Shown piece by piece: positions 715-64,000 of a stretch of DNA of 64,000 nt. The DNA comes from Podarcis pityusensis (taxonomy: Eukaryota), in the NCBI GenBank assembly GCA_964106645.2, contig OZ067045.1, one strand, 5' to 3'. Positions within the stretch are counted from its first letter, which is position 1. Every line of letters begins with the position of its first letter. The notes under the pieces are model-generated. The model saw only the letters and a list, made by a program, of their open reading frames with translations, was not told the origin of the DNA and ran no database searches. Both the position numbers and the translations under genes were made by a program.

Positions 715-2735
715 CTGTGCACCCTCCCTGCTGGGGAAAAGAGAGTAAGAGAGAGAAATATAGGAACAAAATGTGTAACCCACACACAGGTCACATCCAC
801 GTAAGAAAATAATAATAAGAATAATAATGATGATAATAATAATAATAATAATAATTTATTTGTACCCCGCCCATCTGACTGGGTTTCCCCAGCCACTCTG
901 GGCGGCTTCCACATAACATAAGCAGAACATAATCATAACATAAGCAGAGCCTGCTGGATCAGGCCAATGGCCCATCTAGTTCAGCATCTTCTTCTCAGTG
1001 GCCAACCAGGTGCCTGTGCAAAACCTGCAAGCAGGACTTGAGCACAAAAGTGCTCCCCCTGCTTGCAGTTTCCAGCAACTTGTATTCAGAGGCATAATAC
1101 CTCTGACCTGTGGGCAGACCATAGCTTCCATCACTAAGGGCCTTTTTTGGACTATGTCAAGAATGGGGAACCTGTGGCCTCCAGATGTTGTGGGACTCCA
1201 ATCGGCTAACATGGCCAACGGTCAGAGTTGATGGGAGCTGGAGCCCAACAACATCTGGAGAGCCACAGGTTCCCCATCTCCTGGTCTGTGCCATGTGTGA
1301 AACAGCCCTCAGCTGAAACCCCACAAGTCACAATTGGGTGGTAAACCATTTTGAGAGGCTGTGATAAGGCACACATCCGCAGAGGACACTCACAATTTGG
1401 TTTCTTTCTTTCTCTGCTCCTTCCAAATTTGCACCCCAGCAATGTCATTGCCTCAGGCTGTGGAACTTTGGCAAACCCTGGCAGTAGCATGCAATATATT
1501 TTTTCAAAAAATAAAACACCTACAACGTGACTTGAAGAGAGGCTGTTGGCTGTGACTTTTGACAGACAGAAAGACAATGGAGATGGAATTCACCTACAGC
1601 TGGGGCAGGGTGAGGCTCATGGCTCTCTAATGTTTTTGCTGACTTACAACTCCCATCATCCCTGACCACGGGCCATGCTGGCAGGGGCATTAGGAGTTGG
1701 AGCCCAACAACACCAAGAGACACACAGGTTCCCCACTCTTTGACCAAGAGCTGGTAACCATTTTTAAGTGGCCAGTGACCTGTTTCTCAGAGCATCCTCT
1801 GCAGGCTGATGGGGTGCAGAGATATTCCTGCTTGCCTTCATGCACCACCATTGTAAAAATAATTTAGTTCACCAACCCAAAGCATTTTCATGACTTTAGG
1901 CAGATTACAGGCCCAACAAGGGAAAGGCAGTAGGTTTGGGAGCCTAGGGTGTCCTGGAGGTTGCAAAATGAACACTGGGCAATTCATGGACAAACTGAAC
2001 AACTGAACAGAGGGTGATGAGGCCTATAAACAGAGAGACTCTGCTACTCAGCTGCAGCACAGCTGATTCCCATACAGCAGTTTTTGCCAACCTAGTACCC
2101 TCCAGATGTTGTTGATCTACAACTCCCATCAGCCCCAGCCAGCCCCATATGGTGATGGGAGCTGGAGTCCAGCTACATCTGGAGGACACCAGACTGGCAA
2201 AGGCTGCTGCTCAGCAAGGATGGGGAACTTGTGGCCCTCCATATGTTGCTGGAGTCCAGCTCCTAAACCTTGCCAGTGATCAGGGATGATGGGAGTCGGA
2301 GTCCCCATCTGGAGGGGCACAGCTTCCCTCTCCCAGCTATACACAGTCTAAGGGGAGGCTGGGCAGTTTCCACCCCTGCACCTAAATACCTCCTAAGCGT
2401 GTAGCAGTTTTGTCTACACACACAAACACACCGGTCCTAATCCTCTCTCGATCCCACATTGTTTAACTTTACGACACACGAATTCAGCAAAGGAGCGGGG
2501 GCGTCCATCTGGCATCCTGCCAAACGCAAGTGGTTGCGCAGAAGGGCACGGTCGCTGCTGCAAAAATCCCTTCACAAGCAACAAACAGGGAATATGATGC
2601 AGTTTTGTCCCAGCTTTGGCACCGAAGGGGATCTGGTTGCAACCACCACCACCACCCCGCCGCTCTGTGTGTGTCAGTGCGCCAGCCCCTCACAGCTTTC
2701 TCGCTTGCTATACCAGGCATGTAACCGGCACTCAC

Positions 2736-3130
2736 CGCTAGAGCCTTGCAGAAAATCAGTGGGGAGGGGTGGGGGGTGTTTCAGTCTGCGTCTCTTGCCG
2801 CTGAGCTGCTGGAGAACGGAAATCGCATTAGGCAATGAAGCAGGAAAGCGTCACGGGCTGCCCGCTTCCTAGAGCAGGCAAGGTTGCTGCTGGTACTGCT
2901 GGCATGCAGCGGGAGGAGGAGAGAGCTCGGCGGCCGAGCTGTGAATGGCGCGCTCTGCAGCCACACAGGACCGCCGCTTGGGAGCACGACAGCAAGGCAG
3001 CGCCGCCACAGCACCTCCTCCGTCCGCAGCCAGAGAGGGCCCAAGACCAGTGCTGGACTGGTTTCCGGAAGACTAGCTAGCGCCTCCCCATACACACACC
3101 CGCCGCCTGCCCGGGCCAGTTCACACGACC
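2736..3130 (-). other. C1orf216: Probable non-coding first exon of C1orf216 (5' boundary approximate)
   Basis: Consensus donor G|GTGAGT on the minus strand at 2735-2730, at the edge of a CpG-rich block upstream of the coding exon's acceptor. Confidence 0.6.
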
Positions 3131-3360
3131 CAAACTAGCGTGTAGAGAATGCGAGTGGGACAGAAGGTGGGAGCATTTGGGGGCGGAACCGACCTGTTGC
3201 TGGCATTCTGGCCGCTAAACGAGAAGAGCGCCAACGTGCGTAAATAACTCCTTACGGCTTCTCTTGGTCGACAGACACGGGTGAATCACATGGCAAAACT
3301 CTCTGCGGTGGACCGACTCAAAGTGTGCCGGGGATAGGCGGGCCGCGAGGAGGAGGAGGA
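2780..3360. promoter_or_regulatory. CpG island / likely C1orf216 promoter
   Basis: High GC and CpG density relative to flanks; GC-box-like GGGGCGGA at ~3180; positioned at the 5' end of the minus-strand gene. Confidence 0.7.
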
Positions 3361-3431: not shown

Positions 3432-3579
3432 NNNNNNNNNNNNNNNNNNNNNNNNNNNNNNNNNNNNNNNNNNNNNNNNNNNNNNNNNNNNNNNNNNNNN
3501 NNNNNNNNNNNNNNNNNNNNNNNNNNNNNNNNNNNNNNNNNNNNNNNNNNNNNNNNNNNNNNNNNNNNNNNNNNNNNNN
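3432..3579. other. Assembly gap (148 N)
   Basis: Run of N characters. Confidence 1.
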
Positions 3580-3715: not shown

Positions 3716-3847
3716 CAGAGATGGCCAAACTTGGCCCTCCAGCTGTTTTGGAACTACAATTCCAATCATCCCTGACAACTGGTCCTGTTAGCTATGATGG
3801 GAGTTGTAGTCCCAAAACAGCTGGAGGGCCAAGTTTGGCCATCACTG
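3716..3847. mobile_element. Palindromic hAT-type MITE nested in a tRNA-derived SINE
   Basis: Long TIRs CAG(A/T)GATGGCCAAACTTGGCCCTCCAGCTGTTTTGG; 8-bp TSD gtgtaga(t/c) at 3708-3715 and 3848-3855; a near-identical copy lies at 43983-44118. Confidence 0.85.
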
Positions 3848-7469: not shown

Positions 7470-9954
7470 CTGGTCCATTCAGTCCAGCATGCCAGGGTTC
7501 CCACAATTTTTTATTGCTTATTCATTCATTTAAAAGCATTTCTAAACCTCATATTTAAAAATCGAAGTGGTATATAAAAATGCAATAAAGCAGTGTCATA
7601 AAAACAGGTGCAACATAAAAACCAGGAAAAGTATTATAAAAATCAGAATTCAGTAATAATGGGGCCCTTTCTTATGGGTCAGAGAAAGTCAGGGCAGAAA
7701 GATAACCCTGGGAAGCACACAAGCAGGGTACACATCCAATAGATGTCTCCTGCTGCTAGTCCTCATAAACTCTTACTCATTGGTGTAAGGTAGTAGTGGA
7801 GAACCTCCAGCCCATAGGCATAATGCCTGACAGGCCTCCCCATTTGACAGGTGAAGCCATTTTGATGAACCCACCTGCCCTAAGCCTGATGCCATATATG
7901 GTGTCAGGTGTGGGTAGGTATCTTTGTATCTGCAAGGTCCTGTGCATAACATTTGGCAAACTCTGACAATCAGCTGATTGTTGGGGCTTCCATGCATAAC
8001 ACTATGCAAAGATGGGTGACCTGGCAACCCTACCAACCTGCCAAACCTGGCTTACGGCCTGGGAATATGGCACAATGGAATGGAATTTGATTTCTCTCTC
8101 CTTTTGCCTTCACCAACAGGATGAATGGAGACTGACCTGCTTAGGTGGTCAGCGGACCATCAGTCTCAGCAAATAGGATCAATGGTCAGAGATGATGGGA
8201 TTGGTACTCCAACATAGTCTGGAGGGAGCCATGCTGGCTGTAACCACTATAACATTTAATTCATTTTTAAAAATTTAAGTATTTATATTGTCTGCCTGAA
8301 CCTAACCAGAACAGGCCTGATGGTGAGTGCTGTACTCTTCACCCTACCCCCTACCAAAGTTGAAAATGTCAAGAATTTAAAGGCAAGTTGCTCTGCTTGG
8401 GGTTACACAATGACACCATTGGACAGTGTGTACTTGTGCCTATTGACTCATCCAGAGCAGGATTCAGGTCAGGGGTGGGAAACCTCAGGCTCAGAGGACA
8501 ACTGCAGCCCACAAGGCCTCTCCATCTGGCCCTCAGGACTCTTCCTAGGCCATGCCCCCTTCCAGGGGCCATACCCCTTATTGGCCCCTTTTCACACCCT
8601 TTTTGAGTATTTTTTCTTTCTTTCTGGAAAGTGTCCTTGAACTCAGACAATGCTTCTTGAAGGTGAGTGAGCATAGATACTATGGTACTTTACAACGGTA
8701 AAATCTGCATTCGTTGCTCTGCCTACCTTTTGTCCCTGGCCCCGCCCTCTGGTATGTGGCCCTTGAAAGGTTGTTCAGAAGGGAATGCATCACTCAGACT
8801 GAAAAAGTTTTCCCACACCTGTTTTAAGTAACAGGTAGGCTTAGGGAGCAGCATTGAAGCTCTCAGATGAGAAATGTGTGCCACAAGACCAAAGTCCAGA
8901 GGAATAATCTATCCTCCTCTTCCTCCAACAGTCTCGTTCCTCCTCAGATTCCAGCTCAGAAGGGTTTGGGAGCTGTGGCATTTGATGGGACCCTGTGGAT
9001 CACAGTCCCCGCAGGTGGGGCTTGGAGGTTAAGCAGTGTGACACAATGGCGACTGAAGCAATTTGCCAGCTCTCCAAATTGTAGTGTAGAAACATCCAGG
9101 CAAACTCATCCTCCTCACCAATGGGTTAAAGCTTCAGTTTTCTTTTTAAAAACTTCCTCGGACCATCTGTAACCTAACCCTCCCCAAATGCCTCATCTGA
9201 ATTTAATAAAGCAAGAGGGGAGTTGGAGAAATCTCCCAAAAAGCTTTCATAGAAATTAAAGTAAACAATGCGTTGACCTCCAGCCCTTCGTTGCCCTGCT
9301 GCTGACTTGGGCCTGCTTGTTACGGTTACAGACGGTTTGGCGTTTTTTGTTTAATTGTAAACACATTTGGTAAATACGCCAGGATTTGGTGGTAGCTCCA
9401 AAGGGGTCCATTAATGCACCGGTAAAAAAAAGCAGGGAAATGACTCCCATGGAAGGAGAGGAAATCTCCCATGTGAACGGGGGGGAGGCACACTGCTGAA
9501 CAGGCCAGAGACTGACAACGAGAGGCAGCTGCTCTCTCAAAAAAACCCGTAAGTGGACTGGGGGCCATCTTGGATTCAGCTTTGAGCAAATCAGTCAGGA
9601 GCTGCTTGCTGTTAGGGTAAGAAGCCTGTCCTATTTACAAAGCACAATTTAGGCTGCTAGGAAATGTACGGTAATCACCATCCATCCAAATGGTGGCTCA
9701 GAAAGACCTATTGGTGATACCAGATGGAGAATTGTATTGTTTGTTACCCATGTTTTTTGTGGGCAATACACTGAACCAGGGGTTGGAAACCTGTGATCCT
9801 CCAAGTGTTGCTGAACTACAAGACCCTGTATCGCTGACCATTGTGCAAGCTGGTTGGTCTAATGGGAGTTGGAAGTCCAACAGCAACATCCAGAGGGCCA
9901 TAGGTTCCCCCTGCCTATGTGCTAAATAGGCTATGGACATTGTTGGCTTCACAT

Positions 9955-10410
9955 GTAAGAACATAAAGAGTCTCCTGGATAGTCTAGCATCCTGCTCCCA
10001 CAGTGGTCAACCATAGGTCTGTGTGAAACCTGCAAGCAGGGCCTAAGCACAAGAGCACTCTCCCTTTCTGTGGTTACCAGTAACTGGTATTTATAAACAT
10101 ACTGTCTCGACCACAGGGTCAGAGCATAGCCATCATAGTTAGAAGCCATTGATAACCTTACTCTCCATGAATTTGTCCAGGTTGGTGGCCATGGTTGCCT
10201 CCCGCGAGACTGAATTCCATAGTTCATGCTGCATGAATAAGTACTTTGTTATATTTGTCCTGAATCTTCCAACATTCAGCTTCAATTGAATGTCTACAGG
10301 TTCTAGGGTTAAGACAGAGGGAGGAAACCTTTTTATCTGTGCAATTTCTTCATGCCATGCATATGCTCACATACCTCCACATCATGTCTCCTCTTACTTG
10401 CACTTTCTCA
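9955..10410 (-). mobile_element. Degraded CR1-type LINE 3' end
   Basis: Resembles squamate CR1 3' termini; related fragments at ~930-1130, ~30200-30480, and 33230-33336 plus 34240-34310. Confidence 0.55.
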
Positions 10411-16325: not shown

Positions 16326-16437
16326 CAGTATCATACCACTTTAAACAGTCATGGCTTCCCCCAAAGAATACTGGGAACTGTAGTTTGTTACAGGTGGTAA
16401 GAGTTTGCTGGGAAGAGGGATGGATGATTAAACCACT

Positions 16438-19400
16438 GATGGGAACCAGTGTTGTCGACTACATTTTACTGACGCCGGAGCTATTCTCAATTTCTACAAA
16501 AATGGAAGTGGCTGAATATTTTGGTGGTGACCACCTTCCACTGACTCTATTGTTAAACCTAATAGAGCCAATTTCAGTCCCCTCAAACTATAGAACCACG
16601 GTACAAAGCCACCCTGTATACAAAACAAAGAAATGGACAAGCCTCAGCTCCTCTCTTGCCCTGGACATACAAAAATCATTTGATATGTCTGCAGTTCCCT
16701 CTGACCCAATCCTGCCCGCTGATCAATACCGGAAATTACTTGATGCTTTCTCAACAACTTACATAACCACCGCCTCGCCTACTCACCAACGCCTCTTCTC
16801 TGAATCGCCTTGGTTTGACAAGGAATGTAAAGCCCTAAGAAGGCGAATTAGGAAAATGGTCAGAATCATCAAATTTTCCAACGACCCCCAAACCCGTGCA
16901 AAGCTCATAGATATTAAAAGGACATACAGAAACATGATTCATTGCAAGAAACAGCAGCACATCCTTGAGGCTTGGTCCACTCTTCGTTCGGCTGTAGAGA
17001 GGCATGACTCCCGCTCCTTCTGGCGCTTAGTTAGACCTTCGGCACCATTCAATCCAGCTACCCAGATTTCCGCTGATGAATGGATTGCCTACTATTCAAC
17101 CAGTTTCGCTTCTCCAAATCATCTTACAGATCTCCTTCAATCCCCGTCGGACCTCTGTTCCTGCTCTCTTAGTCCCACTTCATCAATAAACTTTACTTCA
17201 ACTCGCATTTTCAACATCATAATGTCAATGCGAAGGAATAAGGCCCCCGGCCCAGACATGGTCCCGTTGGACCTTTTCCTGTCTGATCCTCTTTGGTGGA
17301 GCGAACACCTGACTCCTGTATTCACCGCCATCTCCTCCGCCCTAGACATCCCCGACTCCTGGAGAGAAGCTATAATAGTTCCGATCTTCAAAGGCGGCCA
17401 GCCAAACATCCCTAGGAACTATCGCCCCATCAGTTTATTATCCATCCCGGGGAAAATATTTGCCGCTGTTTTACTGGAGGAACTTCTCTCATGGGTCCAG
17501 GAGAGGAACATTCTACCGCTAGAACAGATTGGTTTCCGAAAGTCAGCATCAACCATGGACCACTGTCTAACTCTCTATCACCTTGCCAGTAAATACACTG
17601 CAACAAGGCAAGGCCACCTATTTGCCGCTTTCATGGACCTGGAGGCCGCCTTTGATTCCATTCCTAGGCAGAGATTATGGTCCAAACTTGCCCATCTGGG
17701 AATTGATCCGCACCTCCTCTCCCTAATTATTTCCCTTTATTCAAACACCACAGCTCGCGTCCGAAGTGGTCCCAACGGCTCCCTCACTACTCCATTTCCA
17801 ACGGCCAAGGGCGTCCGACAAGGTTGTCTCTTGGCCCCTCTACTGTTTAATCTCTATCTTCATGATGCAATTTCCACTTTGAAGCTAGCATCTAAGTACC
17901 CTCCTCACTTAGCAGGCCACCCCGTTGCTTCCCTTTTCTATGCTGATGATGCCGTCATCTTATCCAGAACAGCTGCGGACCTAGCAAATGCAGTTAATGC
18001 ATTTATCGCCTATTGTAAGGCGGAAGCTCTTAATATTAATTATAAAAAATCGAAAGTCCTCCACTTCACTCGTTCCCGCAAACTCAAGTTGGAGCCGCTT
18101 AAGATCACAGGTGGCTACTTAGAAAAGGTAAAAGCCTTTAAATATCTAGGCTTAATTTTCACTTATAATCTCTCCTGGACCACCCATCTACAATCTGCCT
18201 TTCTCGCTGCAACCACGACCTCTAACGCCATTGTCCGATTTTACCACCAGAAGGGCGGCAAACACCTTCCAGCAGCAATTCAAATATTTAATGCCAAAGT
18301 TGTCCCTAAATTATTATATGGATGCGAAGTATGGACTACAGCAATATCAGGTAACTTGGACCGCCCACTTCATATGTTTCTGAGATCTCTTTCCGGCGTC
18401 CCGAGATGTGTCTCAGGTGCAGCCCTACGACTCGAGTTCGCCCAGCCCTCAATTGTTAAACGAGCATGGAGTCGAGCCATTTCCTACAGCTTCCACCTAT
18501 TAGCATCGGATGCTCGAATTAGAGGTGGTTTTTCCAATCTGATCCTAAGAGATATTCATAATTCCCCTTGGAAAACTACAATTAACCTCAAATTCCGCTC
18601 TCTTCTCAATTTGAATTGTAAAACTGTTCTTAACTTAGAGTGTATCAGCCCGGCGGCCCTACCTCCAATTAAAAAGAAACTACAGCAACTTGACTTCTCT
18701 AACACAGCTTCCTATGCAAGAGGGCCGTGTTCAGGCCTAGCCCTAGCTATTCCACCCCCTGAAGGGATCCCTCTATACTGCTTCACAATTTCTTCGGAGG
18801 CTAAGCGAAGGGCCTTTACCTGTGCCCGTCTCAACTGTTTTCCTACAGCAGTTCTGTCGGGTCGTTATTCCAGAGTTCCCATCGCAAATAGAACATGCAC
18901 CTGTAACAACACGGCCCTGGAGACTATGGAACATGTAATGCTCTTCTGTCCTAACTGGACAGATGAAAGATCTCGGTTTTTAACTCCCCTCGTGAATAAG
19001 CTTCATCTCCCAATCCAGCCTTGGATAGTGTCCCTCCTTTTGCAGGATTCTGATTGTTGGATTACCGAGATGACAGCTAACTTCCTGCTTAGTGTGATGA
19101 AGAGGAAAGCGGCACTAACTTCTTCCTTAACACCACAGCTGCAGTCGATACGCCGCACAATCGAACGAAGTTCCAAGTAGTCTTATTGTACAAGGACAAT
19201 GGAGTTAGGATAAATCTGAGGAGCTGAAGGACCCTTTAACGGTCCTCCTCCAGCTTCAGCAGTTTTTTTTGTTTGTTTGTTTCTGTACTATCTGTTGCTC
19301 AATGTTTTAAATCCCCTGTCGCTTTAGTAACCCCCCCTTTCCCCCCCTCTTTCTTTAAGTATTCGCCCAGGAAGATATCTACCTTTACCTCCCCACCCCC

Positions 19401-27055: not shown

Positions 27056-27284
27056 CAGGCATGTCCAACTCCCAAGAGACTGTGATCTACTCCCAGTATA
27101 AAAAAAACTGGCAGTGATCTACCCATTGTCATTGGAGGGAGGAGGAGCGTGTGTGGGGTGGGTGGATTGCACAGAGTTTTTTATTCCCCCCCATAACTTT
27201 TTGCACACAATAAGGATCCTGTGATCTACCAGGATCAGCTGGGGATCTACCGGTAGATCGCGATCTACTGGTTGGACATCCCTG
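27056..27284. mobile_element. hAT-type MITE
   Basis: TIR CAGG(C/G)ATGTCCAAC; perfect 8-bp TSD ccatatgt (27048-27055, 27285-27292). Confidence 0.88.
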
Positions 27285-32439: not shown

Positions 32440-33664
32440 TATATTTGGGACAGTTGCTTTGCAAAAATATGTATATTTAGGAGCAGTGCACATCCCATTC
32501 ACATGCGCACCTGCAACTAGGGGCAGGTGAATCTGTTGGTTTCCGTTTCTCATTTTTCCACCCTTAGGTTCAAGTTCCACATCAGTTTGTAACATATTTC
32601 TTAAAAGTCCTTATGAAGATTCATCAGCATTATAGTATGAATTTCCCCTAATACATTTTAATGCAATTTCCACCAATGTATACATGATTGCAAACAATTT
32701 CTCCTAATATAATGCTTTTTTTTGGTATGTTATTTTCACCAATATATGTGTTTTTATCCATGTTTTGTGTGGATTTGTGTACACATTACTGGGCTGGAGA
32801 ACTGGCATTGCAAAATTTGGGAAAGTGCTATATTTTGCAAGATGGCTGTCTTTCTGTTTGTGCATTGTCTTGGAAAGTAATTTGGAATTCTTGTGTTCTT
32901 ATGTTCAGTTTTCTTCCTCCACAGTAGCTGGATCTGCTTTACTGTATCAGGCTCCAGGTTGTGGGCCAAGAAGAAGCTGAGATATGCATGAATCTGCCAA
33001 ACAAGGCAATATACATGCTTTTTCTTTTTTGTTTATTTTGAAAATGGGTAAATATTCCACACTGAAAATATTACATAATCTAACACCATTTAAAACATCT
33101 GTCTATTGTGATCACATCTAGGCTTCTATTAAGGTAGGTGCCCTATCCATATAATGATGCTGCTGCTAGATGGCACCTTATGAATTTGACCTTCCAACTC
33201 TTCACTTTCTTAGATCCTTTCCTGTACCTAAGCATAAGAACATGGGGACAGCCTGCCAGATACAGTCAAAGGCCCATCCAGTCCACCGTCATCTCCTCAC
33301 AGTGGCCAACCAAACACCTCTGGTAAGCCTGTAAGCTGCCATGAACTGGCAGAACAACGGGGAGGAGGAAGAGGATCCCAGCGAGGGGTGTAGCCAGGAC
33401 TGGGACACACCGAGGCAAGCAGGAGATGGGGAAGGAAGTAGTCACAGGTTGATGGAGGATAACGAGAGAGTGGAGGTCAGTACACAGGAACCAGAGCAGC
33501 AGGACCCATCACCAGAGCCAGAGGGCCTCCTGTCTTCACAAATATGGCAGGCTCTGAGGTGTAAGGAGCAGCAAGAGGGGTGCTCCAGGAAGCTGAGGCA
33601 GGCAAGGGCCCAGAGCCCAGCTCCCTAGCTGGCCAGACTCGCTAGCTCTGGGAGGAGGTGTGTG

Positions 33665-34138
33665 CAGTGGCGTAGCGTGGGGGGTGCCAGGGGGGCCGGC
33701 CGCACCGGGCGCAACATCTGGGGGGGCGCGCTCGCTGCCTCCGGAGTCGCCGAAGAGCCTCGGGCGCAGGCTGTAGCAGAGCCCCATGTCTCGTGGAACC
33801 GACGAGCTGTGCGCGCGCCCGGGCTGAAGGCGTCCGGCAGGCAGCGGCTCTCAGCCCCGCGCGTCAGGGCCGCGGAGGACGTGCCAGGCAGCCCCTCCTC
33901 ACAGCCCCGCCTCCGCTGCTGCTGCTGCAGCTGCTGGGCCATGTTGCATTTTCCTCGCCTCTCTGCCCCCCTCCTCCTCCGGGCAAGCGGCGTGGTTTGG
34001 GCAGCAGCGCCAGCAGCAACTCGACTCAGATCGGCAGGTTAGGGGTTGGGGGGGCGCAAATTACTTGCCTTGCCCCGGGTTAGGGGGCGCAAATTACTTG
34101 CCTTGCCCCGGGTGCTGACAACTCACGCTACGCCGCTG
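33665..34138. mobile_element. Non-autonomous hAT-type element carrying a captured host gene fragment (Pack-type)
   Basis: TIRs CAGTGGCGTAGCGTG / CACGCTACGCCGCTG (14 of 15 match); perfect 8-bp TSD ggtgtgtg (33657-33664, 34139-34146); GC/CpG-rich interior. Confidence 0.88.
33729..34036 (-). pseudogene. GNAL: Captured fragment of GNAL long-isoform (XL-Golf) first exon: 5' UTR plus ~20 codons
   Basis: ATG at 33787 gives MGLCYSLRPRLFG, versus recalled human GNAL XL N-terminus MGLCYSLRPLLFG; similarity ends at the element's subterminal sequence. Boundaries approximate. Confidence 0.75.
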
Positions 34139-35704
34139 GGTGTGTGATTCCTCAGCTGGAGTAGGCTTGGAACAGGTGAGGGGCACGTGCCTCATCAAGC
34201 CCAGATGCTGCAGTCAAAAGGGAAGCAGACCTAAGGTAATCACTGGTAGCCTTCTCCTCCATGAATCTGCCACATCTCTTTTAACACCATCCAAGTTGGT
34301 GGCCATCACTATGAAACAAATCGAGCCCACACTGTTTGTATGTTTTGCTCAATCAAGGAAAATCAGCTTTTTCCTTCTTCTGCATTACTACAGTGCTGAG
34401 CCTTAAAATCACAATTTCCATACAGCTGGAGGGTGCAATAAAAATGCTTTTAAATTTGTTCTGTCATAAACCCCACATTAAGCATCAAGCAAAGCCAGGG
34501 TGTATAATTGATCATTAGAAAAAATAAATTAATTTCGGTCCTTGGCAAACCAACAAGACGAGCCGCGCATATCCAAAACGTTCAAAAGAGATATTTACAT
34601 CTAGCCAGGGATCCCAAGGAGTTCTACTTACTGCTCAGCAGGTAGAGAAACTGTAGGCTAGTAGCAGCCAGTGTTGTGGGGCAGAGCCAAGGAGCCACCC
34701 TCCTCCTGACACCAGTGGTGAGTCTGCTTACCTAGGCAGCACTGGAGTGGGGCAGGGAACCAGGGGGGTTGGGCCTGTGAAGGCACACTGGCAGAGCCAA
34801 TCTGATTACCCTCTGCTGCACCCATGCAACCCTGACCTTACTGATGCCCTGCCCTTGCCCCATTGAGTAAACCAGCAGTGGTGCGGGTGTTGAGAGGGTG
34901 GGTCTCTATCTCAGCTAGGGATGTTAGATAATTCCACTGAGAAGGAAAATGTGGGCCATATTGGCTTATTCATAACTGAGTATGCCCCCCCGCTCCTGTC
35001 CACCATTTGCATAGCATTTCCTTTGCACTGAAATGAATGGGGTGGAGTTCTGGAAGTTTCAGGGGCAGCGGTTTCCAAATATGTTAAAGCCCCAACACTT
35101 CTTTTTTTACAACAATCATTCGTAGGCCAAGGCGGTAGTGCCAAAATATGACTATGCAACATCTGTGCTTCGGGGTGGGTGGAAATGGCATGGGGCTGCC
35201 CAGAGGGGCTTAACTGAAAGCAAAATCTGGGGGTTTGTTCAATTCTTTGAAGAGGGGAGCTAGCAGGCTAAGAAAAGGAGGGAGACAAGGATGGAAGCAC
35301 AACAGTGAGATGGAAGAAGACTGGGAGCCATTGTTAGGCGCTGGGGTGAGGGGATAGGCATCCACTTGTCAAGAGAATGAAATACATGAAGAGTGTGACA
35401 TTTCACTTCAACATTTTTGACATTTTATTTTGAATACGGTTGGCGTGAAGTATGTCCATGACAGGAGACTTCTTTTACAGCAAATGTCAAAAGAGATGTC
35501 AAATTTGTATTGGGGGGCGGGGGGAGGAAATGTCAACCTCTTAATTCTTATTCCTTTTCTCTTTCCAATAGGCTTTTTTTTTTTTCCTGGAGCAGCCCCG
35601 GATTTAAACCATAAGTAACATGACTTGGAACAGGTGAGATGGAGCTACCTCAATAAGATTGCGAAGAACCTCAGAATCAGATAAGGATGACAATAAATTG
35701 CTTT

Positions 35705-37851
35705 CGGACTTCCGGGGTGGCGCCATCGGCAATGGCGGACTCCCTCTGATCTGGAGGGACTAGCTCCACGCGAAACGGGTCTTTTCCGCTACGGCGAAGC
35801 GGGGACCCTTTCAAAAATCACAGGCGGATGAAGCCTGTGACCATGGGACTCGGCAGGCACCTTTAGCGCCCCCCCAACCCGCAAAAGAACCCACTAACGG
35901 GCTCCGGAGCGAAGAGGGGGAAGTGGCGCGGTGCTGAGAGTCAACTGCTTCTTCCGTGGAGCGAAGCCGCACAGCCGTTGCCGGAGAGCGCTGCCTTTTT
36001 CCTGGGACAATTTGGCTTCTAAAATAATCACCCGTGAGTACTTAAATTTCGGACAATTGGACTTTAAATAAGGACTTGCGAGCAGAAAGGAAAATTGGAC
36101 TTAAAAGTTTACCTCAATTTGGCACTGAAACGGGAAGGTCTAAACAGGAAGTTAGCCTTCCGTTTCTTTGTAGATAGATTAAAGCAAAGACATGGCAAAC
36201 TAGAGCTCAGAAAATCGCTTGTAAAGGATTAACTTTCATCATTTAAAATTGTTGAACCCCCCTTCAGAAGCAGGAGAAGAGGGGGGATTTTTTCGGACTG
36301 TTTAAACCTGCAGAAGTGAGTGTAAAGTAAAGTAACTTTCCACCGTCCTGATCCTGGAGCGGGGTGTCAGGACTGACGTTTTTTGAAGCTCATTGACCAG
36401 AGACAAACGTTTTTGACAGATAGCTATAAGAAGAGAAACATTGATTCCATTGTTCCCCTTCGCATTTTAAAGGAACAAATATTGACAAAATATCTGAAAA
36501 AGGAAACATTGTTGTTAGACTTGTCTTTAAAAGAAAGAACAAATAGAAGTTTTCCCCCTAGAGGGAGACTGTGAAACTGTAACCAACTCCAGGGAGCTTG
36601 CAGCTGTTATAGATTACAATCATGGGAATAGACTTCTGACCTTGCAGGACAATGTTTTCAGAAGCTCTGTTGCGTGCTTTCTGTAAAAGAAATGCCCTAC
36701 TGGAACAGCTACATGAGAAGACGGACTTGATGACTGATGCGATCAGAAATTTTGAACAGGCAGTGGGAAATTATATGGAGCCCACCCAGGAATTAAATCA
36801 GGAGTGTGCCCTGACAGAACAGATGAGGGAAGAGGATGTTGCTGAATCTTGGGCACCAGAGATGAAGGGAGCTGTGGCCCAGCAGGAACATGAGCTTTTG
36901 GACTTGACAAATGAACTTGGAAAAAGCCAGATTTGGAAAGATAAAGTTTGGTCTGGTTTGGAAATGGGGGGTTGGATAGACCCCCCTATGCAGGGATGTT
37001 TGGACCTTTCAAGTCTGGCAATGGGCCGTGAGATGTTTGGGGTTGTGGGGGCTCTTAATTTTGGAGGGATTTTGAAACATGTTCTTAAATACCACATTGA
37101 GTTTAGTGTGGACTATGGAAAAGGGGCTGATTTGTTGAGAAGGGTCAAAAACATTGTTAAGCTGGAGTTCCCACGAGTGAAAGGAGCAGGAGACAAAGGA
37201 AAATACAGTTATAAATATGAAGAAGAGCTGCGGAAGGGACATGGAAGAGACTTAAGGGCCTCGGATACAAGGTTACCAGGTTAATGCGCTAGATCGATGG
37301 GATAATAAGGACTGACAAAACCCGGGACCAGGAGGAAGGGACGCTGGATGAAGATTGGATTGTTTTTATTTCTTTTTTTTACTACTAGGATTGTTTTATA
37401 AAATTGATGAATGTTAGAAAAATGTTGGAACAAAATTACTTGGCTTTAGCAAAAATGTTTAAAGAATTATGTAAGAATATTATGGTTATGAGAAGTTGGT
37501 AAAAATAAGATTTAAGTTTTAAGCTTTAAGGTGCTTTATAGTAAGATAAGATTAAAATAGATTAAGGTAATGTAATGACAGAATATTATGAAATATGGAA
37601 AGGATTTGCTGCGACAATTAACAACTAGGATACAAAAAAAGGGAGGAGGAGGAGGTCAAAGAAAGAAGGTAATGACAGTTGAGGATTTGAGAATGATGGA
37701 TTTGTTTTTGAGTGTTTGTGGTGTATTTTTGTTTTTTGAATTTGTATTGTTTGATGTGGTTTGTTTTTTCTTTGTTTTTTCTTTCTCTTTTTCTGCTTTG
37801 TTCTCTTTTGTAATTCTAAAAATTTTCAATAAATATCATTTAAAAAAAAAA
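35705..37851 (+). mobile_element. Apparently full-length non-autonomous L1-dependent retroelement (HAL1-like), 2147 bp
   Basis: Perfect 16-bp TSD gacaataaattgcttt (35689-35704, 37852-37867); CpG-rich 5' end GGACTTCCGGGGTGGCGCCATCGGCAATGGCGG; AATAAA and poly-A; no RT motifs. Confidence 0.85.
36652..37284 (+). CDS. 210-aa ORF of the non-autonomous element; N-terminal half coiled-coil-like, possibly an L1 ORF1p derivative
   Basis: Longest ORF in the element, ATG-initiated on the sense strand, with E/Q/L-rich helical composition; no domain recognised with certainty. Confidence 0.45.
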   Translation: MFSEALLRAFCKRNALLEQLHEKTDLMTDAIRNFEQAVGNYMEPTQELNQECALTEQMREEDVAESWAPEMKGAVAQQEHELLDLTNELGKSQIWKDKVWSGLEMGGWIDPPMQGCLDLSSLAMGREMFGVVGALNFGGILKHVLKYHIEFSVDYGKGADLLRRVKNIVKLEFPRVKGAGDKGKYSYKYEEELRKGHGRDLRASDTRLPG

Positions 37852-43982: not shown

Positions 43983-44118
43983 CAGTGATGGCCAAACTTG
44001 GCCCTCCAGCTGTTTTGGGACTACAACTCCCATCATCCCTAGCTAACAAGACCAGTGGCCAGGGATGGTGGGAATTGTAGTCCCAAAACAGCTGGAGCGC
44101 CAAGTTTGGCCATCACTA
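43983..44118. mobile_element. Palindromic hAT-type MITE
   Basis: Same family as 3716-3847; 8-bp TSD c(t/c)ctatgg. Older related palindromic copies occur at ~1163-1283, 2076-2200, 2216-2335, 9777-9913, 28560-28682 and 41192-41320. Confidence 0.85.
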
Positions 44119-61099: not shown

Positions 61100-61677
61100 C
61101 TATCAATTCAGGAAATGAATTCAGGATTTCCTTTAGTATCTTATCACCTCCTTTACTACCTTCTATATTTCAGCTTGTTCTTTTATTTAAACAACACAGT
61201 TAGAAGGTGGTGTCTACATGATGATTGTTTAGGAGCATAGAAAACCCACAGAATGAGCTACTGGGTACAGCCTCCAGCTTCATTTAAAAAGCAATAGAAA
61301 TGGGAATGGAAGAGCACAGGGCAATGTCTGTTGAAATCTCAGGAGCCTGAGGGGTGACTGAACAAGATACTGAGGGTTTAGGCTTGAGGCTTCAGTGCTC
61401 TGCAAAGGTACTCCCCATGACTGATAAAGGCAGAATCAATTACACAAAGTAAGGAAAAATATGCAAATTTGCTTAGTACACACATTCAGGCTGCAGAATG
61501 GAGTTTCTCTTCAAATCCATTTACTCTGGGGCATACCCAGCCCTGCCCATTAGCTTCCGGTGGACTAGTTGAGTAGAACATTGGCTTTGGGGTGGGAGTG
61601 GAAATAGTTAAGGTTTTGTGTGGAATGCATGCCTGGTGTTTAATTCTGGAATAACCACAATAGTTTGCAGTACTCAC

Positions 61678-61756
61678 TTCTTCACTATCAAAGGCATGGT
61701 CATCTGTTAAGAGACAGAAGTCTCCAAATTCTTCTTCCTCATCTTCTTCCGCTTCT
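61678..61756 (-). CDS. CLSPN: Claspin exon
   Basis: 79 nt, phase 2/0: EAEEDEEEEFGDFCLLTDDHAFDSEE; GTGAGT donor. Confidence 0.92.
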
Positions 61757-62233
61757 CTACAGGAAAGGATTTTTAAAAGGGAAGAAAAAGACTTGCTTAG
61801 CAACTAGAATCTAGCAAAGTGGGAATGTGCAAGTGGGAAAACAGGAGTCCAATATACATTTGGAGGGCCACAGGCATCTCGCCCCTGCTGTCCAACCTGT
61901 CACACCTAGTTAGCCATGACAGAACATGGTGAACAAAACAAAACGCATTAGGACTTATCTATCCTCACAGTCCCCAAGATGTCACTGTACTTAGCACTGC
62001 CTTGGACTAGCTGCGGCTAATTTTCTGGAGTTTAGTTTAGTGCAGAAAGGTAAACAATAAGGAGAGATAGCACCACTTCTTGGCGACTAGGCCAGTGAAA
62101 AATTTTGCTTAATTGAGAAGTTTTCTCCTCCCAGTCGTACCGATTATCTCAATACAATGGATGTTTTCATGCTCCCTCTACTAAAGGAGAGGAAAACCTT
62201 TGGAGAACTGAGTTGCACATCTCCAAGGCTTAC

Positions 62234-62345
62234 CTCTCAGTTGAAAAAGAGCCAGAACAAAGAGCTACTGCCTCAGCCATTGGATCATCAGTGCTGCTCT
62301 CTTTTTCCAGTTTAGGGTTTGCTGAGGAGGATCGAATGGGAGAAT
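62234..62345 (-). CDS. CLSPN: Claspin exon with third Chk1-binding repeat
   Basis: 112 nt, phase 1/2: ...DDPMAEAVALCSGSFSTE. Confidence 0.93.
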
Positions 62346-63650
62346 CTGAGAAAGAAACCAGAATTGAGATGTCACTGGAACAGGGACCAACAGGCAGAAC
62401 CCAGCTGGTCCCAGATAAAGTGTTCTTGTATCCCCAGCCCTTAAACTTATTAAAAAGCTGCTGCTGCTAAAGAAACAGCAATTCCTCTACCTAATATTGG
62501 GAGCTTTTATTTCTCTATATATTATAATGTAAGAACGTCATCACACAGCTCTCATTGGAGGATTTGCATAAAGTCAGGGAAGGGGAGCAGAAGACAAGGC
62601 TGGTTGCACAGCAGCAGCGACTATGACATGGAGGTAAGAAGAGAGGAACAACGAAAGGGAAAAATGTGGCTGTTTCAAACAATAGCAAAAGTCTGAGTAA
62701 AGTGAAAGGTGGGTATCACTTAGAGGAAAATTGCAGTTTTAAGCAACAGCAGGGATTTAAGTAAAACAGGGATGGAGAGATACTAAGACTGAGAAAGTGA
62801 CAATTGTCAACAATGGCAGAGGTTGGACTCAGCCACTGATACCCAAGATGTGATTGTAATCTGTTTAACTACTTCTATTTTTAAATTTTGGGACCTGCTG
62901 GTGAAGGGCAGGCAATAAATCTAATGTCAATAAATAATGATGATAATAAACCAAGCAGGGGAGACACTATGTTTAAAACTAAGGTTTGGGTACAGCAAGA
63001 AGAGAATTTGGAAAGGCTCTGCTGTGCTAGTTTCTGTGGTGAACCCATCTCTGCTATTTCTCCTCGTTAAAACTATTTGGTTTCAAATAAGAAAAAAAAA
63101 TCCTCAGTGTCTTTCCATCTTTCCTTTACTCAAACTCTAGTGTTGCTTAAAACTGCAATTTTCACATTTGTCCCTCCACCCCCACTTTACTGAAACTTCT
63201 GCCAGGTTGAGGAACTTCTTTCCTGGGATGGGACTTCTTGCTCCCTTGACAGTGGCCTTCAGTCACAACAAGAACTTTTCGGGCAAGCAGTCAGACTACT
63301 AAGCTGTTGCATTTTATACAGGTTTCCTTAATCAGATTGTTATATATGCTGTTCTTACCTCCTTATCTTGTTTATTGTTATCCTACATGTGTCTACTATG
63401 CTGCAAGCAGCCTTCAGCAGTGTGTAAATTGAAAATCAGAGTAAAGATTATTTTTAACGGAATAAAATTGCCATTAAAAAAAAAATCCACAGACAAAACC
63501 GTTAAATTTACTTGCCAAAACTAGGTACCTACTAGCCTCTTTCCCTTTGGTTTGATCATCATATTCTGGGTGTAGAATTTAGCAAAAGCCTACCGAAGGT
63601 GGTATGTGCAACCGTAGCTCTTGCTATGAGGAGCAAGATCCACAACTTAC

Positions 63651-63877
63651 TCTGGGAAGCAAACTTTCCAGAGCAAAGGTTGAGCAGCTCTTCCATGTTC
63701 TGCTTCTTGCCATGGTAAGTGTTGGGAGGACACTTGTTCTGAGAGGCAAACTGGCCAGAGCACAGATCCAACAGCTCATCCATGTTTGCATCCATGGCGT
63801 TCTCGTCCATGCTAGCCAACGGTAGGCGGTCCTTGGATGACTGGTATTTGTTCCGGTGATGGCCAACATTCAAAAAC
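63651..63877 (-). CDS. CLSPN: Claspin exon with Chk1-binding repeats 1 and 2
   Basis: 227 nt, phase 2/1: ...[23 protein letters not shown]...[16 protein letters not shown] (ExxxLC(S/T)GxF motif). Upstream exons lie beyond the window. Confidence 0.96.
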
Positions 63878-64000
63878 CTGAAAGCAAAATTCATAACCAT
63901 CTTTGAAAAAGTCCACAGTCATCAGAGGAAGCTCAGATGGTTTGGCAAGAAAGGTCTCCAGCATGGACCTTTTGGGATGCTTCTTCTGTAGCTACACTTA

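Follow-up and report, generated by a model that had tools for sequence, protein, structure and literature searches.

Pack-TIRs, the closest described systems, are elements in which 100-5000 bp of internal sequence lies between both ends of one TIR element (PMC8277862). Their definition also calls for an unambiguous parental copy in the same genome, at least 90% identical and without flanking element ends, and leaves out segmental duplications and retrocopies (PMC8277862). A survey of 100 animal genomes recorded 370 of them, 208 of hAT type and 38 in alligator, and found that gene capture by TIR transposons in animals is nearly always single-copy and independent of transposition (PMC8277862). 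Multicopy cases numbered 4 among 281 unique ones and favour GC-rich cargo; those passages of the survey that give counts list 3-5 copies (PMC8277862). Anolis, the only lizard surveyed, yielded no Pack-TIR, with 77 such TIR elements annotated (PMC8277862). In Pack-hAT-N8_XT of Xenopus tropicalis, 291 bp of the CAPSL 5' UTR lies within hAT arms (Tan et al. 2021, PMC8277862). Capture by the Helibat Helitrons of vesper bats is biased to promoters, 5' UTRs and first exons, and these elements reach thousands of copies (Thomas et al. 2014, PMC4224331).

The 64-kb stretch of Podarcis pityusensis DNA analysed here (the window) contains a 474-bp unit at 33665-34138. We read it, with a probability of about 0.8, as a multicopy Pack-hAT that carries the start of the brain signalling gene GNAL (long isoform) and was amplified by transposition in lacertids. 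It resembles Pack-hAT-N8_XT in its cargo (a GC-rich gene 5' end of about 300 bp), its distal insertion, its distinct TSDs and its breakpoint in mid-element. Unlike the frog element, which has 3 copies (another frog case has 5), the lizard element apparently has hundreds or more, its family occurs in at least eleven taxa, and its cargo includes the start codon. Like the Helibats, it carries a 5'-end gene cargo amplified over a lineage; unlike these rolling-circle elements, which have neither TIRs nor 8-bp TSDs, the carrier is a cut-and-paste hAT MITE. Plant Pack-MULEs and Pack-TYPE elements likewise have TIRs around GC-rich gene fragments about 300 bp in length and are often multicopy, but Pack-MULEs belong to the Mutator superfamily, with long TIRs, 9-10-bp TSDs and plant hosts (PMC8277862). 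hobo_AC of Anolis carolinensis is likewise a lizard hAT with foreign DNA and mosaics, and its families reach hundreds of copies; it differs in its TIRs (TAGGCTTG), its length of 1.3-15 kb and its filler, mostly other transposons and not a first exon (PMC3014272). The Pegasus-like BmMITE-15 of Bombyx mori likewise has a TIR beginning CAGTGGCGTA, a free-sequence 8-bp TSD and the 300-bp size class; the link of the lizard family to the hAT-Tip100 or Pegasus-like clade is one of TIR likeness. Gene cargo is not reported for BmMITE-15 (PMC2997013).

The copy scale and the lineage-wide spread by a cut-and-paste element are apparently the new part, judged from contig depth and two full copies. A loaded hAT amplified across a lizard family would be a clear counter-example to the single-copy conclusion of the animal survey, and comparable to the bat Helitrons. 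The first-pass annotation had called gene capture little described in reptiles. This understated the record, as animal Pack-TIRs including those of alligator and the cargo-carrying hobo_AC of Anolis (PMC3014272) are known, and the high copy number is the more unusual feature. We found nothing in the literature on this element family or on gene capture by lacertid hATs.

A hAT-type unit and a second full copy

The features of the unit are as follows.

33657-33664 (plus): left TSD, 8 bp, GGTGTGTG, exact match to the right TSD
33665-33679 (plus): left TIR, 15 bp, CAGTGGCG-type, same class as BmMITE-15 (PMC2997013)
33665-33729 (plus): left arm of the parent MITE, G-rich, with the GGGGGCGC motif at its end, from contig joints
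33730-34036 (minus): captured CpG-island cargo, very probably GNAL long-isoform 5' UTR and first 17-19 codons; left border uncertain (33730-33736), GNAL assignment covering 33736-33953
34037-34113 (plus): central motif with TTAGGG, and the subterminal unit as a tandem 33-bp duplication, also in the Podarcis lilfordi copy, missing from the cargo-less form
34077-34138 (plus): right arm of the parent MITE including the right TIR (34124-34138), from contig joints
34139-34146 (plus): right TSD, GGTGTGTG, exact match to the left TSD

The first-pass annotation had described a 474-bp unit with 15-bp TIRs and a perfect 8-bp TSD, and this description held: the TIRs (33665-33679 and 34124-34138) agree at 14 of 15 positions and the TSD is exact. 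A strict scan found 2 TIR+TSD units in the window versus 0 in each of 30 shuffles. In TIR start, TSD and size class the element is presumably similar to hAT-Tip100-type elements such as MER97. Both TIR starts, CAGTG at the left end and CAGCG at the right end, fit YARNG, the start motif of hAT TIRs (PMC3014272); the ends of the family are written here as CAGTGGCG...CGCCGCTG. The unit is a non-autonomous hAT-type element, as had been proposed, with 8-bp TSDs and YARNG-start TIRs. No autonomous hAT with matching ends was found in the window or at the P. lilfordi locus described below (L001). A Pack-MULE was excluded by the 15-bp TIR and 8-bp TSD, against the long TIRs and 9-10-bp TSDs of that class.

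The duplicated subterminal motif of about 30 bp noted earlier is a 31-nt repeat at 34050-34080 and 34083-34113, whose spacing of 33 makes it a tandem 33-bp unit. The interior (33729-34036) has a GC content of 0.71 and a CpG o/e of 0.83, against 0.29 for the whole window, and the window contains no further copy of the element. A G-quadruplex motif by the loose rule lies in the left arm at 33679-33726, and the strict rule gave no match in the element; because the arm satisfies the loose rule only, the G-quadruplex idea is weak. Comparison of the element with Rfam gave no significant match, and RNA folding showed no special structure (z -1.8).

A protein search with the antisense frame gave a sole match, PODLI_1B014909, a predicted protein of Podarcis lilfordi. 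Its locus (L001; GCA_947686815.1, OX395143.1) contains a complete 515-bp copy at 9878-10392, flanked by its own exact 8-bp TSD, CCAGTACT versus GGTGTGTG in the window. The two copies agree in their arms, left breakpoint, tandem duplication and TIR asymmetry. The P. lilfordi copy has the TIR mismatch too, which makes the mismatch a trait of the family, not a sign of decay. Substitutions amount to 3.5-5.7% in aligned blocks, and the structural differences are 31-bp and 9-bp indels, a 40-bp block that has diverged and an additional piece of 86 bp. Beyond the TIRs, unrelated repeats are all that the two loci have in common, and the loci are non-syntenic. Segmental duplication and retrocopying were excluded by the two loci without common flanks and by the absence of a poly(A) tail; the cargo ends inside the first coding exon.

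The 86-bp piece (L001:10201-10286) is GC-rich, occurs only in the P. lilfordi copy and has GTAAG, a donor-like site, at 10240 (minus strand). It represents either further upstream GNAL sequence, lost from the window copy, or the end of another captured first exon. As a gene, PODLI_1B014909 (80 aa, CAI5797314.1) was rejected, L001:10001-10241 being the antisense frame of the element copy; copies of the element generate false gene models of this kind.

Identity of the cargo

Three features on the minus strand bear on the parent of the cargo.

33771-33787 (minus): start-codon region ATG-G-L-C-Y-S, 15/17 against the mouse Gnal long-isoform reverse primer
33934-33953 (minus): 5' UTR stretch, upstream ATGs at 33949 and 33942, 13/20 against the mouse forward primer, core 12/14
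33536-33787 (minus): chimeric 83-codon frame that begins with about 18 codons of GNAL and continues through the transposon arm and TSD into the host repeat

The mouse Gnal long isoform (NM_177137.5) has its own exon 1, and isoform-specific qPCR primers for it have been published (PMC12408007). Reverse-complemented, the reverse primer reads ATG GGC CTA TGC TAC AG, or M-G-L-C-Y-S, and the first six codons of the cargo peptide agree with it. In the cargo, the minus-strand ATG at 33787 opens MGLCYSLRPRLFGDSGGSE; both differences from the primer fall at third codon positions and are silent. We take the ATG in the primer to be the start codon of the GNAL long isoform. The human long isoform presumably begins MGLCYSLRPLLFG, and the first-pass annotation gave its identity to the cargo peptide as 12 of 13.

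The two mouse primers support the earlier assignment of the cargo to the first exon of this isoform, and indicate that 33736-33953 is very probably GNAL long-isoform exon 1. For MGLCYS to be a chance match, or for the cargo to be a mosaic with only its last 60 bp from GNAL, is very unlikely. It is true that the forward-primer match is weak alone (67/3000 simulations, p about 0.02). One RNA-size contig also exits the element at 33991, and because of this exit and the 86-bp P. lilfordi piece with its donor-like site, the distal cargo may be composite. However, not one simulated interior out of 200,000 had MGLCYS at an ATG, the analytical value being about 5e-6, and 33771-33787 is the best match of the reverse primer across the 64 kb on either strand. 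The second primer lies upstream of it, on the correct strand and in the correct order, at a qPCR-like distance of 184 bp (137 bp in the P. lilfordi copy), and control primers showed no pairing on the element.

Searches for a GNAL parent with 20-30-aa start peptides were blank in PDB sequences, 1.84-billion representatives and the ESM Atlas, as were those with the 83-aa and 119-aa frames in a word-indexed protein database. These blanks are uninformative because the query was too short and the full-length protein lies beyond the length window. DNA-pattern searches of metagenome and viral contigs found nothing, nor did the literature contain anything on the cargo peptide or the variant names. As a gene, the 83-aa frame was rejected: protein searches found no homologue, and it is probably no gene. 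It enters the left arm and the flank after about 18 codons.

In the P. lilfordi copy an upstream ATG (L001:9880-10112, minus; MAQQQQRRRG...) lies in frame with MGLCYS, 36 codons upstream, and in the window copy the upstream ATG is out of frame. The ATG stretch is similar to the mouse 5' UTR primer, so GNAL long-isoform leaders may have kept an upstream ATG.

Copy number, age and capture of the cargo

Two DNA runs (X1 and X12) and two RNA-size runs were compared with 33455-34354. The summed depth of the cargo was 13,000-69,000 in X1 and 27,000-368,000 in X12, versus 8 and 67, respectively, at the unique flank; summed contig depth is no copy number, since overlapping short contigs inflate it. 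Taken at face value the depth gives 400 to a few thousand copies, and a tenfold discount leaves no fewer than 40-160. Copies per genome apparently number hundreds or more, with tens to thousands possible from summed contig depth, and two copies (window and P. lilfordi) were read end to end. Flanks at both TIRs are heterogeneous (57 and 89 contigs, agreement 0.34, in X12). The first-pass annotation had predicted dispersal with different TSDs, and both these flanks in the DNA runs and the pair GGTGTGTG and CCAGTACT agree with this prediction.

If the element were a low-copy Pack-TIR comparable to the frog CAPSL element, with anything from a few copies to some tens, the high depth would have to come from overlapping contigs and from GC-rich low-complexity matches at 85% likeness. 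Besides the inflation of summed depth, this reading can point to a predicted protein from only one other copy and to a depth that varies 5- to 13-fold along the cargo, because of which parts of the cargo may be shared with other subfamilies. Against it, even the lowest cargo bin has about 1,600 times (X1) and about 400 times (X12) the depth of the unique flank, and that bin equals the adjoining CR1-like stretch in depth. Single variants of the cargo lie on 80-104 distinct contigs in X12, and the discounted figure of 40-160 copies allows for tenfold inflation. We therefore regard a low-copy element as improbable and retain the multicopy Pack-hAT.

Cargo 31-mers were present at 0.52-0.78 in runs of nine other organisms from seven studies, none of which has all of them, and at 0.15-0.26 in those of a tenth, which are small and probably RNA. 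Because the cargo is common to the window species, P. lilfordi and ten other organisms, the capture is old and lineage-wide; by this sharing it predates the split of at least eleven lizard taxa. The proposal that the capture is recent failed, because the left breakpoint and the 33-bp duplication, like the cargo, are common to P. lilfordi at 3.5-5.7% divergence and the cargo is present in ten other organisms. The CpGs, which had been called intact, are not so: four or five window positions are CpG losses relative to the family majority. In X1, 33 of the 71 variant places are C>T or G>A changes; in X12 it is 51 of 91. The window insertion alone may be fairly young, judging by its exact TSD.

The DNA runs also contain a cargo-less form, in which 33724 is joined to 34077 via TTA to give a 125-bp MITE (8 and 19 contigs). 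Depth over the arms exceeds that over the cargo by a factor of 15-25. About 307 bp thus lies between arms that occur joined in the 125-bp form, as in Pack-TIRs. The middle of the cargo-less MITE has TTAGGG-like units in variable number, so that the MITE is a dispersed and very abundant source of short telomere-like repeats in lacertids. GGGGGCGC is single in the empty form and present at both cargo borders in both loaded copies. Some contigs have other letters after the left arm, from 33730 on, and in one variant 33735 is joined to 34032; these joints suggest that other cargos use the same place.

The sequence of events could be as follows. The ancestor would be the 125-bp non-autonomous hAT (MITE), a very abundant element that is present in lacertids and has ends of the CAGTGGCG type. 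In the G-rich, TTAGGG-containing middle of one such MITE, a break or stalled replication may have been followed by repair synthesis with a switch of template: the CpG island of GNAL long-isoform exon 1 would have served for about 300 bp before synthesis went back to the MITE. GGGGGCGC would come to stand at both borders if short repeats of the element were the points at which synthesis departed and came back. The route would be the gap-filling or FoSTeST of PMC8277862, for which the criterion is microhomology of element and parent at the breakpoints; the doubled GGGGGCGC is the element-side observation. Because both ends stayed intact, hAT transposase acting in trans could have moved and amplified the loaded element. 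Its copies would later have acquired indels and further insertions, consistent with the multicopy state and distinct TSDs observed. They are most likely passengers, methylated and slowly losing CpG, with some carried in host RNAs.

A use for the cargo is a different matter. It might have aided spread as a portable CpG-island leader with a start codon escaping silencing, or neighbouring genes might draw promoters, 5' UTRs or N-termini from it. CpG o/e is kept at 0.83-0.84 in both full copies, cargo with arm is found on contigs of the RNA-size runs, the P. lilfordi copy has its upstream ATG in the same frame as MGLCYS, and 5'-end cargos reach the highest copy numbers in bat Helitrons (PMC4224331). 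However, CpG-loss changes dominate, and the frame of the upstream ATG differs between copies. The window copy has no splice donor after the ATG. The RNA status of the runs is a guess and their contigs are without strand or start; passive inclusion in host transcripts explains the cargo in them. The cargo is dispensable for spread, because cargo-less arms are 15-25 times deeper. A useful cargo is, in our judgment, unlikely, and the passenger reading is preferred.

A broader reading is that one lacertid hAT MITE family repeatedly captures CpG-island first exons at a G-rich hot spot in its middle that resembles telomere repeats. Several loaded subfamilies, that with GNAL included, would then occupy hundreds or thousands of sites, and some copies would serve as portable promoters or as 5' leaders that bring a start codon, or would give RNA that feeds back on GNAL. 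We consider this doubtful; if true, it would amount to gene capture on the Pack-MULE scale by a vertebrate cut-and-paste transposon.

An empty parent, loaded variants and many species make three questions testable: the route of capture, a benefit of the CpG island (spread or escape from silencing) and the spill-over of silencing. Silencing of hundreds of copies might spill onto the parent promoter, as proposed for plants. The copies will also confound read mapping and methylation calls at lacertid GNAL exon 1.

Genomic setting of the window copy

The window copy lies within another repeat, of which two parts can be recognized.

33330-33656 (no strand assigned): left part of the host repeat, multi-copy and unclassified, from contig depth and joints; left border approximate
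34147-34230 (no strand assigned): right part of the host repeat, from element-free contig joints; right border approximate

Both DNA runs contain host repeats free of the element, with joints of 33634-33664 to 34139-34170; in the RNA-size runs, two long contigs span both host-repeat flanks without the element. We treated such contigs as paralogous empty sites. The first-pass annotation had asked for an empty site, and one was found in this paralogous form in DNA and RNA-size runs. One X12 contig, 97% identical to the unique right flank, departs from the window at 34236, as would a contig from an orthologous site without host repeat and element. TG..CA/TSD borders of the host repeat were not found. 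We take 33230-33330 and 34235-34310 to be the two halves of a CR1-like fragment. The nesting has three layers, the CR1-like fragment containing the host repeat and this the Pack-hAT.

Claspin (CLSPN) exons lie at 61486-63900 on the minus strand, and that at 63562-63900 matches PDB 7pfo_Q (E 7e-29). Because this exon is Claspin, the window is not the GNAL locus; Claspin and GNAL are, we assume, on different chromosomes in human and chicken. The window copy is one later insertion into another repeat, just past the 3' part of a Claspin gene and not at GNAL, as its surroundings show. The reverse direction, in which the GNAL first exon derives from the element or the window is a misassembled GNAL locus, is largely refuted and hardly credible. 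Apart from the missing parent locus, nothing speaks for it. The start region is common to mouse and far older than the family, whose copies differ by 4-6%, the reading frame crosses into the arm about 18 codons in, Claspin is the neighbour, and an independent assembly has a full copy with another TSD. The direction from GNAL into the element stands.

Elsewhere in the window, an unbroken frame of 931 codons at 16385-19180 (plus) encodes a non-LTR retrotransposon reverse transcriptase with a YADD motif. A CpG-rich 5' end at 35705-37851 is accompanied by a 210-aa orphan ORF at 36652-37284, and 2500-3350 is CpG-enriched and promoter-like without an assigned gene. An N run lies at 3432-3579. Three small hAT MITEs of other families, with 8-bp TSDs, are present at 3716-3847, 27056-27284 and 43983-44118.
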